From sequence record LT960552.1: a DNA stretch of 64,000 nt; one strand, written 5' to 3'. The notes beneath the pieces are model-generated. The model saw only the letters and a program-made list of their open reading frames with translations, searched no databases and was not told the DNA's origin. Every line of letters starts with the position of its first letter. Within the stretch, counting starts at the first letter, position 1. Made by a program: the position numbers and the translations under genes. This document shows, piece by piece, positions 1,925 to 49,592 of the stretch.

Positions 1925-3061
1925 ATGAAAGGCAAATATTTTTTCAAAGATGAAAATGGTTTTCCAGTCGAGATTCAAGAATTTGATTATGAATATGTTC
2001 GTAATTCTTTACTAAAGGTATTTGATAAAAATATCGCGAAGAAATATATCTTTAATGTTATCGTTAATCGCAACCATGATTCTCTTGGATTGCCAGTTTT
2101 TGATGTTCGTCCATTGAATTTAAATGATATCTATTATGATAGTACTCGACTTCGTGTACTAGAAATGATGTTAGATGATATATATTTTGGTCGCATTTCA
2201 ATTAAAGAATTACCAGTTCCTAAATTGCAGCATGAATACCAAGAATATTTAGAGGGACGTGCTAAACCAGCTCCAGTTCCTGCAATTCCAGATGTTCCTG
2301 CACCTATTGTTTTTACACGAGTTGAAATTAGTGAAAATGATGAACGTATTATGCAACTAGGAACAGTAGAATCAAATGTTCCAATTGTTCCAATGAAAGT
2401 ACTAGACTGGATTGACAACTTTGAAGTATGTAGTCAAGAAATGACTGTTAATACACAAAAGTTATCAGAAGAACAAATCCGTTTAGTTCAAGTGTTGAAA
2501 ACTAACAGTGATTACATTCATAGTGTATTCTCTAATTTAACTTCAGTACTTGAGGCAATGTTCCCATTAAAGCCATCATTCACACAACGGTTATTTGGAA
2601 CTACTAAAGATATCGAAGTTAAACAGGATGATTTAGGAACTATTTTAAACACACTACGCAGTGCAGTATCAGTTGACCCAAATCGGTTTAGTGGTATAGG
2701 GGAAGTGTTTAAAAATATTCAAAATAGTATTCAAGAAATAAAAAATACGGTTGAACAAGGTGTTATTGGATGTAAGTTTGTAATTCAAACCACTGAAGAT
2801 GCGTATGAATTTGAATTGCGTCAAGAACGTTTGATGAAAATTCGGGCAACTACTGAAATTTCAGAACTGTCACTTGTAAGTATCAATAAAAAGTTTCTAT
2901 CTGATTTAAATAAGTTAAAAGAAGTGCAAGAAGTTGTAGTTCCTTTACTTATTATCAAGTTACAAAATCAAGCAACTAAAAAAGTTGATGATGAAACAGT
3001 TAATATCATTCGTAATTTGGCATATAGTCGTGATTCCGAAAAAAGTTCAGACCAAAAATAA
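1925..3061 (+). CDS. hypothetical helical protein, possible TelA partner (378 aa)
   Basis: Helical C-terminal half with TQRLFG segment loosely resembling TelA-family proteins; adjacent to TelA. Confidence 0.55.
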   Translation: MKGKYFFKDENGFPVEIQEFDYEYVRNSLLKVFDKNIAKKYIFNVIVNRNHDSLGLPVFDVRPLNLNDIYYDSTRLRVLEMMLDDIYFGRISIKELPVPKLQHEYQEYLEGRAKPAPVPAIPDVPAPIVFTRVEISENDERIMQLGTVESNVPIVPMKVLDWIDNFEVCSQEMTVNTQKLSEEQIRLVQVLKTNSDYIHSVFSNLTSVLEAMFPLKPSFTQRLFGTTKDIEVKQDDLGTILNTLRSAVSVDPNRFSGIGEVFKNIQNSIQEIKNTVEQGVIGCKFVIQTTEDAYEFELRQERLMKIRATTEISELSLVSINKKFLSDLNKLKEVQEVVVPLLIIKLQNQATKKVDDETVNIIRNLAYSRDSEKSSDQK

Positions 3062-3088
3062 AATAATGGAAATTATTAAAGATTTTCA

Positions 3089-3117
3089 TTGACAGGTCAT
3101 TAGAGTGATGCTATAAT
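3089..3117 (+). promoter_or_regulatory. sigma70-type promoter
   Basis: TTGACA-N17-TATAAT with TG extension. Confidence 0.85.
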
Positions 3118-3173
3118 CTTTTACATCAAGACGGCACACTCTCCCATTAACTTAGAAATAAAGGAATTACACA

Positions 3174-4310
3174 ATGATTGACGATCATAATAATGGTTTT
3201 GAAGAAGAACGCCAAAAAGCAACTAAGCGTAATCGTAAACCACGTACAACAAAAAAAGCAGAACCAGTAACTATCGATCAAGATGTGTTTGAACAAGAGA
3301 CAAAAAATCTTCCAGTACTACGTGATGCTAAAGGCACACAAATGGAACTGACTGTATCAAATATCCATTCATTGGGTTCAGATGCTGGACAAAATATTGG
3401 TAAATTGTCAGAAGAAATTTTGTCTAAAGTTAAAGTTGCAGATACTGGCGAATTAGGTGAAGGTATTTCTAATATTCTTACCTTAACTCGCAAAGTAGAT
3501 ATTACTCGGTTAGGTCAACAACGTACTGGTATGCTTTCACGTGTTTGGAATATCTTTGGTGATACTAAGCAGAAAGTACTGGATCAGTTCGAAACAAGTA
3601 AAGACCAAATTGAAAAAATTACCAACACATTAGGTTCAGGTATTGACCGTATGCGTGGTGAAGCAACTTGGCTTGAAAATGCGTATGATGCTAATATTGA
3701 ATATTTGCATGAACTAGAAGATATTTTAGATAATGTCGATCTAGTAAAAGATATCGAAGATAAAAAGCTTGCAGTACTAATGGCAAATCCAGATACTGCT
3801 ATGAACGTACTGGATGAACAACGTATCATTACTGATGCATTAGATAAACAAGCTGATAAACTTCGTCGTTTAGTTCAACTAGCAAAATTGACTGCACCTC
3901 AAATTGCATCAATGCGTAAAGTTAACGTAAACACTGTTGAAAAATTTGAATCATTGAATACTGTTGTAATTCCTGCATGGAAAAATAATATGAGCTTAAG
4001 TCTCATTAGTTTGCAACAGAAAAAAGATAATGAATTATCAAATATGATTGACAATGAAACCAACCGTTTGTTAAAGGATAATGCAAAAACCGTGGCACAA
4101 AACATGAAAGATGCAGCAGCCGCAAACCAACGTGGTGTAATTGATTTAGGCACCCTACAATCAATTCAAAACGATATGTTGGCTGGTATTAAAGAAACAA
4201 TTCGTATCGAAGAAACAGGTCGCCAAGAACGTAAGCAAGCCGCTATCCAAATGCAAAAAATGGATAATGATTTGAAAACTGCATTACGTGATATTGCACA
4301 GAAAAAGTAA
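3174..4310 (+). CDS. telA: toxic anion resistance protein, TelA/KlaA family
   Basis: Coiled-coil protein with family-like segments (QIEKITNTL, TAPQIASMRKVN, VIPAWKNNMSLSL). Confidence 0.8.
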   Translation: MIDDHNNGFEEERQKATKRNRKPRTTKKAEPVTIDQDVFEQETKNLPVLRDAKGTQMELTVSNIHSLGSDAGQNIGKLSEEILSKVKVADTGELGEGISNILTLTRKVDITRLGQQRTGMLSRVWNIFGDTKQKVLDQFETSKDQIEKITNTLGSGIDRMRGEATWLENAYDANIEYLHELEDILDNVDLVKDIEDKKLAVLMANPDTAMNVLDEQRIITDALDKQADKLRRLVQLAKLTAPQIASMRKVNVNTVEKFESLNTVVIPAWKNNMSLSLISLQQKKDNELSNMIDNETNRLLKDNAKTVAQNMKDAAAANQRGVIDLGTLQSIQNDMLAGIKETIRIEETGRQERKQAAIQMQKMDNDLKTALRDIAQKK

Positions 4311-29230: not shown

Positions 29231-29312
29231 GCTGCCTTCCCATAATTGGTATTGGACCGCACTTGTAATGCGGCGGGGAAACCCATTCTCGGTTCAAGTC
29301 CGAGGGGTAGCA
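29231..29312 (+). tRNA. tRNA-Thr(TGT) with long variable arm
   Basis: Loop CTTGTAA, V arm GGG-GAAA-CCC; ends A-CTA. Confidence 0.8.
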
Positions 29313-29465
29313 CTAATTAGTTATTATATGGCCGAAGTCACACTCAATGACTATAAATTTGAGTGTTTTATAGAGATTATACAGCAGAAGCTGTTTCGAA
29401 GAAATTCTGAGGCAAGTCAGCCAAGAAACAGAATGATGAAATAAAAAGTACTACGGTACTTTTAT

Positions 29466-37346: not shown

Positions 37347-37499
37347 GGAATTGTAATGATTACTAATGAATGTATTGAATCCAAAACATTTGATGATAAC
37401 GTTCGTAACACATTAAATGATGAAATGGAATTATTGCGTATAAACACTATTGATGGATTACATGATGCTGTTAATAAATTAAAATAATAAAAGAATACC

Positions 37500-37741
37500 G
37501 CATGTATTAGGATGTTGGCCTAAGAGTAGCCATCATTTAAAGAGTATCGAGAACGATCCGTCTAGTGAAGAAGCCACGAAAGTAACTAGCGTATAAGTTC
37601 AGGGGGAAGATTCTGAAAATAGTACTGATATGTTTCATGGGCCAGTATGGAATTAAGTATTCAATCAGCGGTGGCGTTGATTTTATATAATGTCAGTACT
37701 TACCCTTAGAGATTTTGGTGTAATAACACACTACTACATGC
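37500..37741 (+). ncRNA. 23S rRNA H42-H44 (L11-binding/GTPase centre) mimic with ~170-nt insert
   Basis: AGGATGTTGGCCTAAGAGTAGCCATCATTTAAAGAGT...GGTGTAATAACACACT closed by GCATGTA/TACATGC. Confidence 0.75.
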
Positions 37742-37765
37742 ATTTTAATTAAATGAGGATACCTT

Positions 37766-38822
37766 ATGTTTGAATTTGACAGTGTTCAAGATTTTGTTTG
37801 TAAATCTTTAATAGGAAAAGTACTTGTTAAGGTTGATGATGTTGAACTTTTAGAAACTATAGTTCGTGCTCATCATGATTCTAGTACTAATTCTATTATT
37901 GTAGAATCAGAAACATCACAAATATATATCTATAATAGTTCTTTTGTGATAGTTGATAACTTGGTTGAAGTAGATTGGGGAAACTATAGTTTACAAGTAG
38001 AACCTAAATTTGGTATTTCAAGTTGGTTATCCAAATCTGAAAAAAATGAAGATTATGGAGATGTATTCAGTACTGACGAATTCTTTGAACATGTTGAATC
38101 TGGTATGTTCATCGATTCAGATGGACATGGATATCCAAGTAATGGAACTCATCATATTTTCACCTGTTTGTCAGTACGTGATCTTGCAGCATGTAAATAT
38201 AGTAAAACTGTATCTCACATCATATGGTATAATAAATGACTATAAAAGTAAGTGGAAAAGTAACTGAAGTAAAATCAGTTGAAGTTGATATTAGTATTGT
38301 TGAGTTAGAAAAAGCTTCATCAAATTTGATTCCAGGTCAGCTTTTGATTATATTGAAAAAGAAATTAGTTCAAAAACTTATTGAGAAAGATGGTTCTTTA
38401 GATAATGCTGAACTATCATGGAATGATAATTATTGGGAAATTTTTGATTATTATGATTACCATCATAGAGAAAATAAATTTATAAAACTTCGTGATTTAA
38501 ATGATGAAGAAAAGTACGCATTATCTACATTTAATGATGTATCTGAACTATTCAGAAAATTACAATGACAGTACAAAAATTTGAAAAGTTACCTATCCAG
38601 ATTTATGCCCTTGAATGGACTGGTAATAATATTAATGAGTTAAAAGACTTTGGTAGTCCAAACGAAGTAAAGATCGATAATATGGGTCATTGCAAAGTTG
38701 AAACTTTAGAAGGTTGGTTAACTGCATCGGTTGGTGATATGATCATCAGAGGTGTACAAGGGGAAATTTACCCATGCAAACCGGATGTGTTTGCATTAAC
38801 GTATCGTAAAATTGAGGAATAA
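37766..38822 (+). other. three hypothetical genes (37766, 38236, 38565)
   Basis: Coupled ORFs; last has the common phage motif ETLEG...GDMIIRGVQGEIYPCKPD. Confidence 0.75.
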
Positions 38823-42240: not shown

Positions 42241-42316
42241 GCCTTTGTAGCTCAGTGGTTAGAGCGGGAATCTCTAAAATTCTTTGTCGTCGGTTCGAGT
42301 CCGACCATCGGCACCA
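42241..42316 (+). tRNA. amber suppressor tRNA (anticodon CTA)
   Basis: 76 nt; stem GGAAT/ATTCT, loop CTCTAAA; canonical D and T arms; CCA encoded; two acceptor mismatches. Confidence 0.8.
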
Positions 42317-47638: not shown

Positions 47639-47752
47639 GCAGTGATCGTCTAGAGGCTTAGGACACGAAAAGCGATTCTTGATTAAGAATCTTACGGCAT
47701 CCACAACTTTCATTCAACGAACGTAACGCAGGTTCGAATCCTGCTCACTGCA
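47639..47752 (+). ncRNA. interrupted tRNA-Glu-like RNA, ACAGCA family
   Basis: Glu-type D arm and TAAC V loop; insert GATTCTT/AAGAATC + ACGGCA; CTTTCAT loop. Confidence 0.8.
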
Positions 47753-49471: not shown

Positions 49472-49592
49472 GGCGAGTTAGCTCAGTGGTAGAGCACGTA
49501 GAAACCAAGGATTCTAGTACTAGATTCCCGCAGCAACAATAACTCATACTATGATAAAGTCGTGGTCGGGGGTTCAAATCCCTCACTCGCCG
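49472..49592 (+). ncRNA. interrupted tRNA-like RNA with CAT loop, ACAGCA family
   Basis: Insert GGATTCT-AGTACT-AGATTCC + GCAGCAA; CTCATAC. Confidence 0.8.

Follow-up and report, generated by a model that had tools for sequence, protein, structure and literature searches.

A predicted phage RNA family that resembles the GTPase-associated centre of 23S ribosomal RNA and is often found beside tRNA genes

Locus, likeness to 23S rRNA and phage family

The 64,000-nucleotide (nt) stretch of DNA analysed here, hereafter the window, is part of the genome of Yersinia phage fHe-Yen9-03; its positions 37400–37850 correspond to positions 285400–285850 of LT960552.1 at 100% identity (BLAST). The subject of the analysis is an element at 37500–37741 on the plus strand, which resembles the L11-binding, GTPase-associated centre (GAC) of 23S ribosomal RNA (rRNA). 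The element lies inside a 278-nt gap that carries no annotation in the record, between g407 (37356–37487) and g408 (37766–38239), both of which are plus-strand genes for hypothetical proteins. It occurs once in the 64-kilobase (kb) window, and its neighbours there gave no Pfam matches and only PHROGs of unknown function. The window also contains a dispersed cluster of 20–22 transfer RNA (tRNA) genes, all on the plus strand (Rfam, ARAGORN). No plus-strand open reading frame (ORF) of at least 30 amino acids was found within 37488–37765. A protein-coding reading of the element was rejected on this ground, and also because a 33-amino-acid ORF on the minus strand (37537–37638) overlaps covarying helices and because U-G pairs, described below, favour the plus strand.

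The initial annotation, made from the letters alone, had described the element as a stand-alone mimic of the 23S L11/GTPase-associated domain interrupted by a structured insert of ~170 nt. The strings that it quoted were found in place, namely AGGATGTTGGCCTAAGAGTAGCCATCATTTAAAGAGT at 37509–37545 and GGTGTAATAACACACT at 37717–37732, together with a closing stem of GCATGTA (37500–37506) and TACATGC (37735–37741) and an insert helix of AGTACTGATA (37621–37630) and TGTCAGTACT (37691–37700). The insert is indeed structured, and its extent was refined to 172 nt (37546–37717), located exactly between the equivalents of rRNA positions 1090 and 1091. The description as a stand-alone mimic was borne out by 101 distinct homologues, by covariation of the core pairs and by a tertiary triple that also covaries. 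Two features went beyond that annotation: the element belongs to a phage family found within tRNA clusters, and its insert opens with a kink-turn-like junction.

The 5′ block of the element matched an annotated 23S gene in all 5426 of 5426 complete Escherichia coli genomes, over 36–38 nt and with 87%–89% identity. Within one E. coli rrn operon, the only significant BLAST match was 23S 1053–1088 (E = 1.5e-6; 32 of 36 positions identical). Relatives of the element matched E. coli 23S rRNA with E values from 1e-5 to 1e-11, and in these the loop of helix 44 (H44; 1091–1100) was matched as well. When 16 elements were compared with the E. coli rrn operon by BLAST, no rRNA match was found for the insert and nothing was matched beyond the GAC, in agreement with the earlier statement that no other rRNA-like sequence flanks the element. 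The idea that the insert imitates another part of rRNA, such as the sarcin–ricin loop, was set aside because this search returned the GAC only.

The likeness also held in the reverse direction. A covariance model built from 36 phage cores alone (model R1) had a single match in the E. coli rrn locus, the genuine GAC (41.7 bits, E = 2e-7), and a single match in a Paenibacillus 23S fragment, again the genuine GAC (54.7 bits). In both alignments to true rRNA, the block comprising the insert stem Pa, its loop, the strand Pa′ and the linker UUUG was deleted exactly, which fixes the insertion point between 1090 and 1091 within a Firmicute-type AAAGAGU|GCGUAAUAGC. Alignment to a large-subunit (LSU) rRNA covariance model, suggested in the initial annotation, succeeded in one direction only: the LSU model of Rfam gave no match to the interrupted element at E ≤ 10, whereas the phage-core model recovered the 23S site.

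Several derived features are common to the family and absent from the rRNA of Proteobacterial hosts, namely AGAGU, the UUUG linker and A1101; E. coli rRNA has AAAGAAAGCG and U1101 instead. These shared features suggested a single origin followed by spread among phages, and argue against repeated capture of rRNA from hosts. A match in Paenibacillus phage Pd_22F was found to be genuine 23S rRNA in that record and was not accepted as a family member.

The family was assembled by BLAST with the window element and three relatives, and subsequently by pattern scans of IMG/VR and metagenomes. The first two IMG/VR patterns were too narrow, returning known isolates and chance matches; later patterns based on the 3′ junction succeeded. 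A search of other jumbo phages, as the initial annotation had advised, accordingly disclosed a wide phage family of 101 distinct homologues, all in phages or viral/metagenomic contigs, mostly of 100–440 kb. The hosts of the isolates represent twelve genera (Yersinia, Serratia, Erwinia, Pectobacterium, Cronobacter, Xanthomonas, Ralstonia, Acinetobacter, Vibrio, Aeromonas, Pseudomonas and, for the Lak phages, Prevotella). Enterobacterial carriers are Rak2-like jumbo phages, including Serratia phage BF, the Erwinia pEa_SNUABM phages and Kaldavass, Pectobacterium phage CBB and Cronobacter phage GAP32. Xanthomonas carriers are XbC2, XaC1 and XacN1, and Pseudomonas carriers are pf16, UNO-G1W1 and Milchi; the element was further found in Ralstonia phage RSP15, Acinetobacter phage ME3, Vibrio phage 2.275.O, Aeromonas phage 4_4572 and Prevotella Lak megaphages, and many copies are located on ~170–190-kb human-gut metagenome contigs. 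No T4-like phage was present among the BLAST matches. A pattern scan of 185,579 bacterial and archaeal species genomes (one per species) yielded a single match, on a 14-kb contig of a metagenome-assembled genome, and the family therefore appears to be essentially confined to phages.

Two types can be distinguished. In type A, which includes the window element, nnC-GA comes after AAAGAGU and the 3′ side has the sequence CCCUUAGAGnnUUUGG; in type B (pf16, UNO-G1W1, Aeromonas phage 4_4572 and Milchi), GGGAC comes after AAAGAGU, the sequence of the 3′ side is UCCCUUUGG, and the insert differs, with no obvious kink-turn. Milchi carries a type A and a type B element in tandem (locus L066, ~877–1180 and 1203–1375), with tRNA-Met and an HNH endonuclease gene immediately downstream. 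The Lak copies (loci L064 and L065, ~1195–1640) keep the architecture, starting with AAAGAGU-UUC-GAGAAG and ending with CCCUUAGAGAAUUUG; the sequences of their helix 43 (H43) and H44 have diverged (H44 = GCCGAGUAAAGGAC), and R1 still scored them at 31–36 bits.

Core fold, covariation and the inserted arm

The core of the window element can be laid onto the GAC segment by segment, with all parts on the plus strand. The closing stem P1, equivalent to the top of helix 42 (H42; 23S ~1045–1055), is formed by 37500–37510 and 37731–37741, with 10 of 11 pairs formed here, and its 3′ strand is followed by AUUUUAAUU; across the family, 10 of the 11 pairs change on both sides. The equivalent of H43 (23S 1057–1081), which matches E. 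coli 23S rRNA, occupies 37512–37536 and includes the 1067 loop at 37520–37528. It is followed by the junction UUAAAGAGU (37537–37545; 23S 1082–1090), in which A1088 (37543) is the partner of U1060 (37515) and G1087 (37542) pairs with C1102 (37729). Beyond the insert, the equivalent of H44 (23S 1091–1102) occupies 37717–37729, with the GUAAUA loop at 37720–37725 and A1095 at 37722; an extra G (37717) stands ahead of this helix, opposite A1101.

Covariation was evaluated in a set of 36 diverse cores, from which the inserts had been cut out, using a gapless alignment scored on the GAC secondary structure. Paired cells accounted for 90.8%, compared with 65.7% in column shuffles, and 19 of the 23 core pairs changed on both sides. 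The covariation score was 0.633 vs 0.175 in shuffles, none of 500 of which reached it, and slid partners scored at most 0.19. In the wider set of homologues, pair 1058–1080, for example, occurs as U-A (58), G-C (19), A-U (12) and C-G (8), and the C-G pair at 1064–1074 is reversed to G-C in some members. The initial annotation had drawn attention to the replacement of C-G by U-A beside the GUAAUA loop (1092–1099) and had taken it as a sign of selection on the structure. This replacement is real (C-G in 47, U-A in 28 and U-G in 26 of the 101 homologues), and the evidence for selection now reaches far beyond one compensatory pair, given the both-sided changes and the covarying tertiary triple. 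Compensatory changes are pervasive among the homologues, which contradicts a reading of them as decaying rRNA.

The triple consists of base 1072 (37527) and pair 1092–1099: C at 1072 accompanies C-G (47 homologues), and U accompanies U-A (27) or U-G (26), with one exception in 101. We take 1072:(1092–1099), U1060–A1088 and G1087–C1102 to be the tertiary partners seen in crystal structures of the GAC. In a set of 46 sequences, U1060/A1088 was kept in 45 and G1087–C1102 in all 46. Conservation within the mimic is lowest in the loops. Position 1067 is A in 64, G in 35 and U in 2 of the 101 homologues, position 1070 is A in 77 and G in 24, and positions 1068–1070 and 1096/1097 vary; in the H44 loop, A1095 is kept in 98 of 101, and G1093, U1094 and A1098 are also kept. 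Thus, the fold of the GAC is present, whereas the full constraints of a working ribosomal site, judged by the variation at A1067 and A1070, are not. Position 1061 varies across the family (U, A or G), and it is likewise not conserved in natural GACs (PMC6239185).

Compared with the GAC of 23S rRNA (H42–H44; E. coli 1051–1108), the phage element shares both hairpins, U1060/A1088, G1087–C1102, the 1072 triple and a free position 1061, and its junction AAAGAGU is that of Firmicute-type rRNA. In contrast to the rRNA domain, it is a separate viral gene of ~240 nt with phage ORFs or tRNA genes on either side; a plain stem takes the place of the long H42 and its kink-turn Kt-42, and the element carries an arm of 93–379 nt at 1090/1091, the extra G opposite A1101, and non-invariant A1067 and A1070.

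The 26 U-G pairs at 1092–1099 would be C-A on the opposite strand, which identifies the plus strand as the RNA, and the plus strand also folds better than its complement (−63 vs −50.5 kcal/mol, z = −2.5). Given the pervasive covariation, the restriction to phages and the recognition of 23S rRNA by R1, the comparative sequence evidence indicates that the element is a non-coding RNA gene whose structure is under selection, and that it is not a remnant of rRNA.

The inserted domain (37546–37716; 172 nt with G37717) is composed of stem Pa, a junction, helices Pb, Pc, Pd, Pe, Pf and Pg, and a UUU linker (37714–37716), and its length ranges from 93 to 379 nt across the family. Pa is a stem of three base pairs (bp) formed by 37546–37548 and 37711–37713, for which 16 different combinations of 5′ and 3′ strands occur family-wide, nearly all of them complementary. 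The junction helices of 94 type-A members were extracted by anchors, helix by helix. The non-bulged side of the junction (37549–37604) contains GA (37549–37550), Pb, Pc, A37601 and the 5′ strand of Pd, GGG (37602–37604), with Pb pairing GAAC (37551–37554) with GUUC (37597–37600) and enclosing the hairpin Pc (37556–37594). Among the type-A members, the joiner between Pa and Pb is GA in 77 and AA in 17, the 4-bp Pb is fully complementary in 93 and has 26 distinct sequences, and the joiner between Pb and Pd is A in 88. The bulged side (37703–37713) contains the 3′ strand of Pd, CCC (37703–37705), followed by UUA (37706–37708), GA (37709–37710) and the 3′ strand of Pa, GAU (37711–37713). CCC, paired with GGG, was present in all 94 members, and UUAGA preceded Pa′ in 93. 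The type-A junction therefore appears to match the kink-turn consensus, with CCC as the C-stem, UUA as the 3-nt loop, a G-A step, Pa as the NC-stem and a second G-A opposite; the presence of a third helix on the non-bulged strand would make it a k-junction.

In the distal domain (37621–37700), Pe (37621–37631 with 37690–37700), the insert helix of the initial annotation, covaries across the family and closes Pf (37632–37653) and Pg (37657–37688). Pf and Pg are separated by UUAA, a motif seen repeatedly at this distal junction among the inspected sequences. Between the junction and Pe lies a purine-rich strand beginning with GGGGAAGGAC. The stretch 37602–37620, which reads GGGGAAGGAC(C)AGUACAG in many members, resembles 23S 1037–1051, the 5′ strand GGGAAGGCCCAGACAG of H42/Kt-42; this likeness exceeded shuffles in phage ME3 only (locus L060, ~1300–1320; score 24 vs a maximum of 22). 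A fold constrained to the comparative structure is feasible (−50.6 kcal/mol). No Rfam family covered the element in gathering mode over the whole window, at E ≤ 10 over 37350–37900 or in 10 related loci; in the window the gathering score was reached by tRNAs only, and Rfam 15 holds no family for the element.

tRNA-cluster context and transcription signals

Of the 101 elements, 41 have a tRNA gene no more than 20 nt away and 65 have one no more than 500 nt away; several elements are abutted by tRNA genes on both sides. At those loci, 489 tRNAs are on the same strand as the element and 9 are on the opposite strand. This same-strand proximity suggested that the RNA is probably made with or beside the phage tRNAs, as part of tRNA precursors, and is released by tRNA-processing enzymes. 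A possible sigma-70-type promoter (ATTACA-17-TAAAAT; 37457–37485, plus strand; 9 of 12 consensus matches) would place a transcription start a few bases upstream of the element. The Rak2-like relatives share a conserved U-run downstream of P1. In Ralstonia phage RSP15 (locus L006), a perfect TTGACA-17-TATAAT lies ~50 nt upstream of the element (~1440–1475), and a short match to the ends of the transfer-messenger RNA (tmRNA) model lies just downstream (1984–2037; 20.6 bits, E = 1e-4).

No protein is consistently encoded beside the element. The possibility of a conserved partner protein specified by the preceding gene was rejected, as the small ORFs that precede the element in unrelated phages share no homology. 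In phage XacN1 (locus L061, 406–1056), the gene directly upstream of the element is annotated as a 2′-5′ RNA ligase, an RNA-repair-type enzyme.

Possible functions, related systems and further observations

Our favoured interpretation, to which we assign a rough probability of 45%, is that the element gives rise to a stable, structured non-coding RNA, made with or next to tRNAs, and that this RNA functions as a trans-acting mimic with a host protein, most likely uL11, as its binding partner. Such an RNA would reproduce the folded 58-nt L11-binding/GAC domain (the top of H42, H43, H44 and their tertiary contacts) and would carry a fourth arm at 1090/1091. As a free molecule, it could bind in trans a host protein that recognises the shape of the rRNA domain. 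The most likely target would be uL11, and the kink-turn arm might also recruit L10(L12)4. The target would then be drawn off ribosomes or ribosome assembly during infection, with a blunted L11-dependent RelA stringent response or an altered regulation of stalk proteins as plausible outcomes.

The initial annotation had proposed a decoy or scaffold for L11/L10–L12, translational GTPases, RelA or rRNA-targeting toxins, and the pattern of conservation reduces the number of likely ligands among these. In rRNA, A1067 is the main contact for translation factors and thiostrepton. A1070 has been described as invariant in rRNA, and the tertiary fold of the GAC is needed for L11 binding (PMC6239185). 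In the phage elements the L11-recognised fold is kept and the constraint on A1067 and A1070 is loosened, which would favour a ligand that recognises shape, for example the C-terminal domain of uL11; with A1067, A1070, 1096 and 1097 relaxed, a trap for GTPases or thiostrepton would fit less well. L10(L12)4 reads a kink-turn plus an unpaired UAA in rRNA and in its own mRNA leader (PMC4538822), and the rRNA kink-turn that it uses is Kt-42 in H42 (PMC1919483).

Several points weigh against uL11 capture in trans. The insert exits beside A1088/A1089 of the tertiary core and could sterically block L11. The Kt-42 portion of native H42 is missing from P1, and the kink-turn is located on a different arm from that in rRNA, so that L10 binding by this arm is speculative; moreover, the insert of type B elements, such as that of pf16, has no obvious kink-turn. 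L11 is already held by mature ribosomes, and the benefit of a sponge within one infection cycle is not evident. The promoter evidence is weak, with a regional count of such sites no higher than in shuffles, and a consensus scan found no canonical terminator. We put at somewhat less than even odds the proposal that a portable copy of the stalk base captures uL11 (possibly with L10(L12)4) or intercepts a host weapon, thereby rewiring translation or the stringent response. Among the explanations considered, we rank a uL11 sponge or mimic, with or without stalk proteins, first, followed by a decoy against a toxin or defence directed at the GAC, a trap that captures factors or RelA, a cis-acting leader and, last, debris.

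The main alternative, which we consider unlikely, is that the same gene supplies abundant free copies of the domain as a decoy, soaking up a host abortive-infection or competitor toxin directed at H43/H44 for cleavage or modification. Phage tRNA clusters have been linked to counter-defence against tRNA-targeting nucleases, and a decoy would parallel these clusters, which are thought to replace or shield tRNAs attacked by host nucleases. The element is strictly phage-borne and lies within such clusters, one copy adjoins the 2′-5′ RNA ligase gene, and the bases G1093, U1094, A1095 (98/101) and A1098 of the H44 loop are kept. An interbacterial ADP-ribosyltransferase toxin reportedly modifies H44 of 23S rRNA, which would mean that enzymes aimed at the GAC site exist. 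However, we know of no anti-phage system that targets the GAC, and a decoy would have to compete with very abundant ribosomes. Furthermore, the variation is concentrated in the loops (1067, 1068–1070 and 1096–1097), which would be unexpected if an enzyme were to be fooled at a specific nucleotide.

It is still less likely that the RNA, with or without stalk proteins, traps EF-G, the EF-Tu ternary complex, IF2, RF3 or RelA, or binds the tRNA elbow, and in this way directly adjusts translation or the stringent response. The ribosomal GAC contacts these factors and the elbow of the A/T-tRNA, A1095 is almost invariant in the family, and tRNA genes are co-located with the element. However, outside the 50S subunit the GAC by itself binds factors only poorly, G occurs at 1067 in 35 and at 1070 in 24 of the 101 homologues, and the element offers no mimic of the sarcin–ricin loop, and its insert shows no rRNA similarity.

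A cis-acting leader, through which free L11 or L10 would control the transcription or translation of downstream genes, appears improbable. mRNA leaders that mimic rRNA provide a precedent (PMC4538822, PMC3616713), and the U-run after P1 in Rak2-like phages would be compatible with such a role. However, the downstream genes are unrelated between phages and consist of hypothetical protein genes or tRNAs, ribosomal-protein genes are absent from the vicinity, no function is known for the neighbouring genes, and the close spacing to tRNA genes (≤ 20 nt in 41/101, in some cases on both sides) does not suit a leader.

Finally, the element is very improbable as non-functional, decaying host rRNA, perhaps with a degenerate intron or mobile insert at an LSU site near 1090: although a U at the end of the 5′ flank and a G at the end of the insert recall the boundaries of group I introns, and HNH endonuclease genes lie near two copies, this explanation conflicts with 101 copies from phages of unrelated hosts that share the derived features AGAGU, UUUG and A1101, with the pervasive covariation including the tertiary triple, with the covarying Pa that closes the insert at its boundaries in a manner not group-I-like, with inserts as short as 93 nt, and with the lack of flanking rRNA and of any intron or other Rfam family at E ≤ 10. 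A group I intron near L1090 was specifically rejected, since Intron_gpI gave no match (E ≤ 10 at the element; E ≤ 0.5 in 10 loci), the stem at the boundary is a covarying 3-bp helix, and 93-nt inserts occur.

Known systems offer partial parallels. The rplJL/L10 leader (RF00557) is, like the phage RNA, a non-ribosomal RNA that imitates the site of a stalk-base ribosomal protein. The site in the L10 leader combines a kink-turn with an unpaired UAA (PMC4538822). The type-A phage insert appears to match the kink-turn consensus and, in the sequences inspected, shows the recurring UUAA, but their geometry relative to the GAC is unlike that of rRNA, and no such arrangement is obvious in type B. L10 leaders are cellular, cis-regulatory and located upstream of their own ribosomal-protein operon, and they imitate the H42 part rather than H43/H44, whereas the phage RNA is stand-alone and viral, lies among tRNAs, copies the L11 part almost letter for letter and has no Rfam match.

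Apart from tRNAs and tmRNAs, the tRNA islands of phages are known to contain a small number of enigmatic large RNAs. GOLLD, which is associated with tRNA clusters (PMC12990946), ROOL and the 'species 1/2' RNAs of the T4 tRNA cluster are, like the present element, ornate phage non-coding RNAs located by tRNA clusters, and their function is not known. GOLLD and ROOL have no sequence or model similarity (Rfam) to the phage element, and the latter differs from all of these RNAs in having a recognisable ribosomal-domain model, which points to a ligand. In its proposed logic, the element is comparable to 6S RNA, CsrB-type sponges and phage pseudo-ToxI, in which a protein is titrated by a free RNA resembling its nucleic-acid target; one phage RNA has been described that overcomes a host system by such mimicry (PMC3475682). 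Unlike these decoy RNAs, the phage element imitates a folded rRNA domain.

A full-text literature search found no description of a phage-encoded GAC mimic. The family was previously uncatalogued, and ribosomal-protein leaders, decoy RNAs and tRNA-island RNAs are its conceptual kin, none of them a stand-alone viral copy of an rRNA domain. A selected, stand-alone copy of a functional rRNA domain would represent a new class of viral gene, and, if the RNA does mimic the stalk base, it would be the first known virus-encoded, trans-acting mimic of an rRNA domain. The imitated domain is among the best-characterised RNA–protein sites, and its known binders (L11, L10/L12, thiostrepton and GTPases) provide a direct handle on function. 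Titration of uL11 or the stalk, if it occurs, would add a new way for phages to interfere with translation or the stringent response; a decoy function would imply an undiscovered host defence that attacks the ribosomal GTPase centre. The ~100 natural variants of the GAC fold with an extra arm could also be useful for RNA structural biology.

Some further observations concern the tRNA clusters themselves. The window encodes, at 42241–42316 on the plus strand within the phage tRNA cluster, a tRNA of the amber-suppressor type with a CUA anticodon, labelled 'Pyl' by ARAGORN, and CUA or UUA suppressor tRNAs also lie near elements in several related contigs (L075, L104, L119 and L130). Rfam tRNA matches of 114 and 121 nt at 47639–47752 and 49472–49592 (plus strand) are absent from the ARAGORN output and may carry an insert or intron; conversely, tRNA-Thr at 29231–29313 was reported by ARAGORN and not in the Rfam list. 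In contig L124, ARAGORN predicted a permuted tmRNA (2936–3512) in the same tRNA cluster, just upstream of the GAC-like element at 3788–4037.

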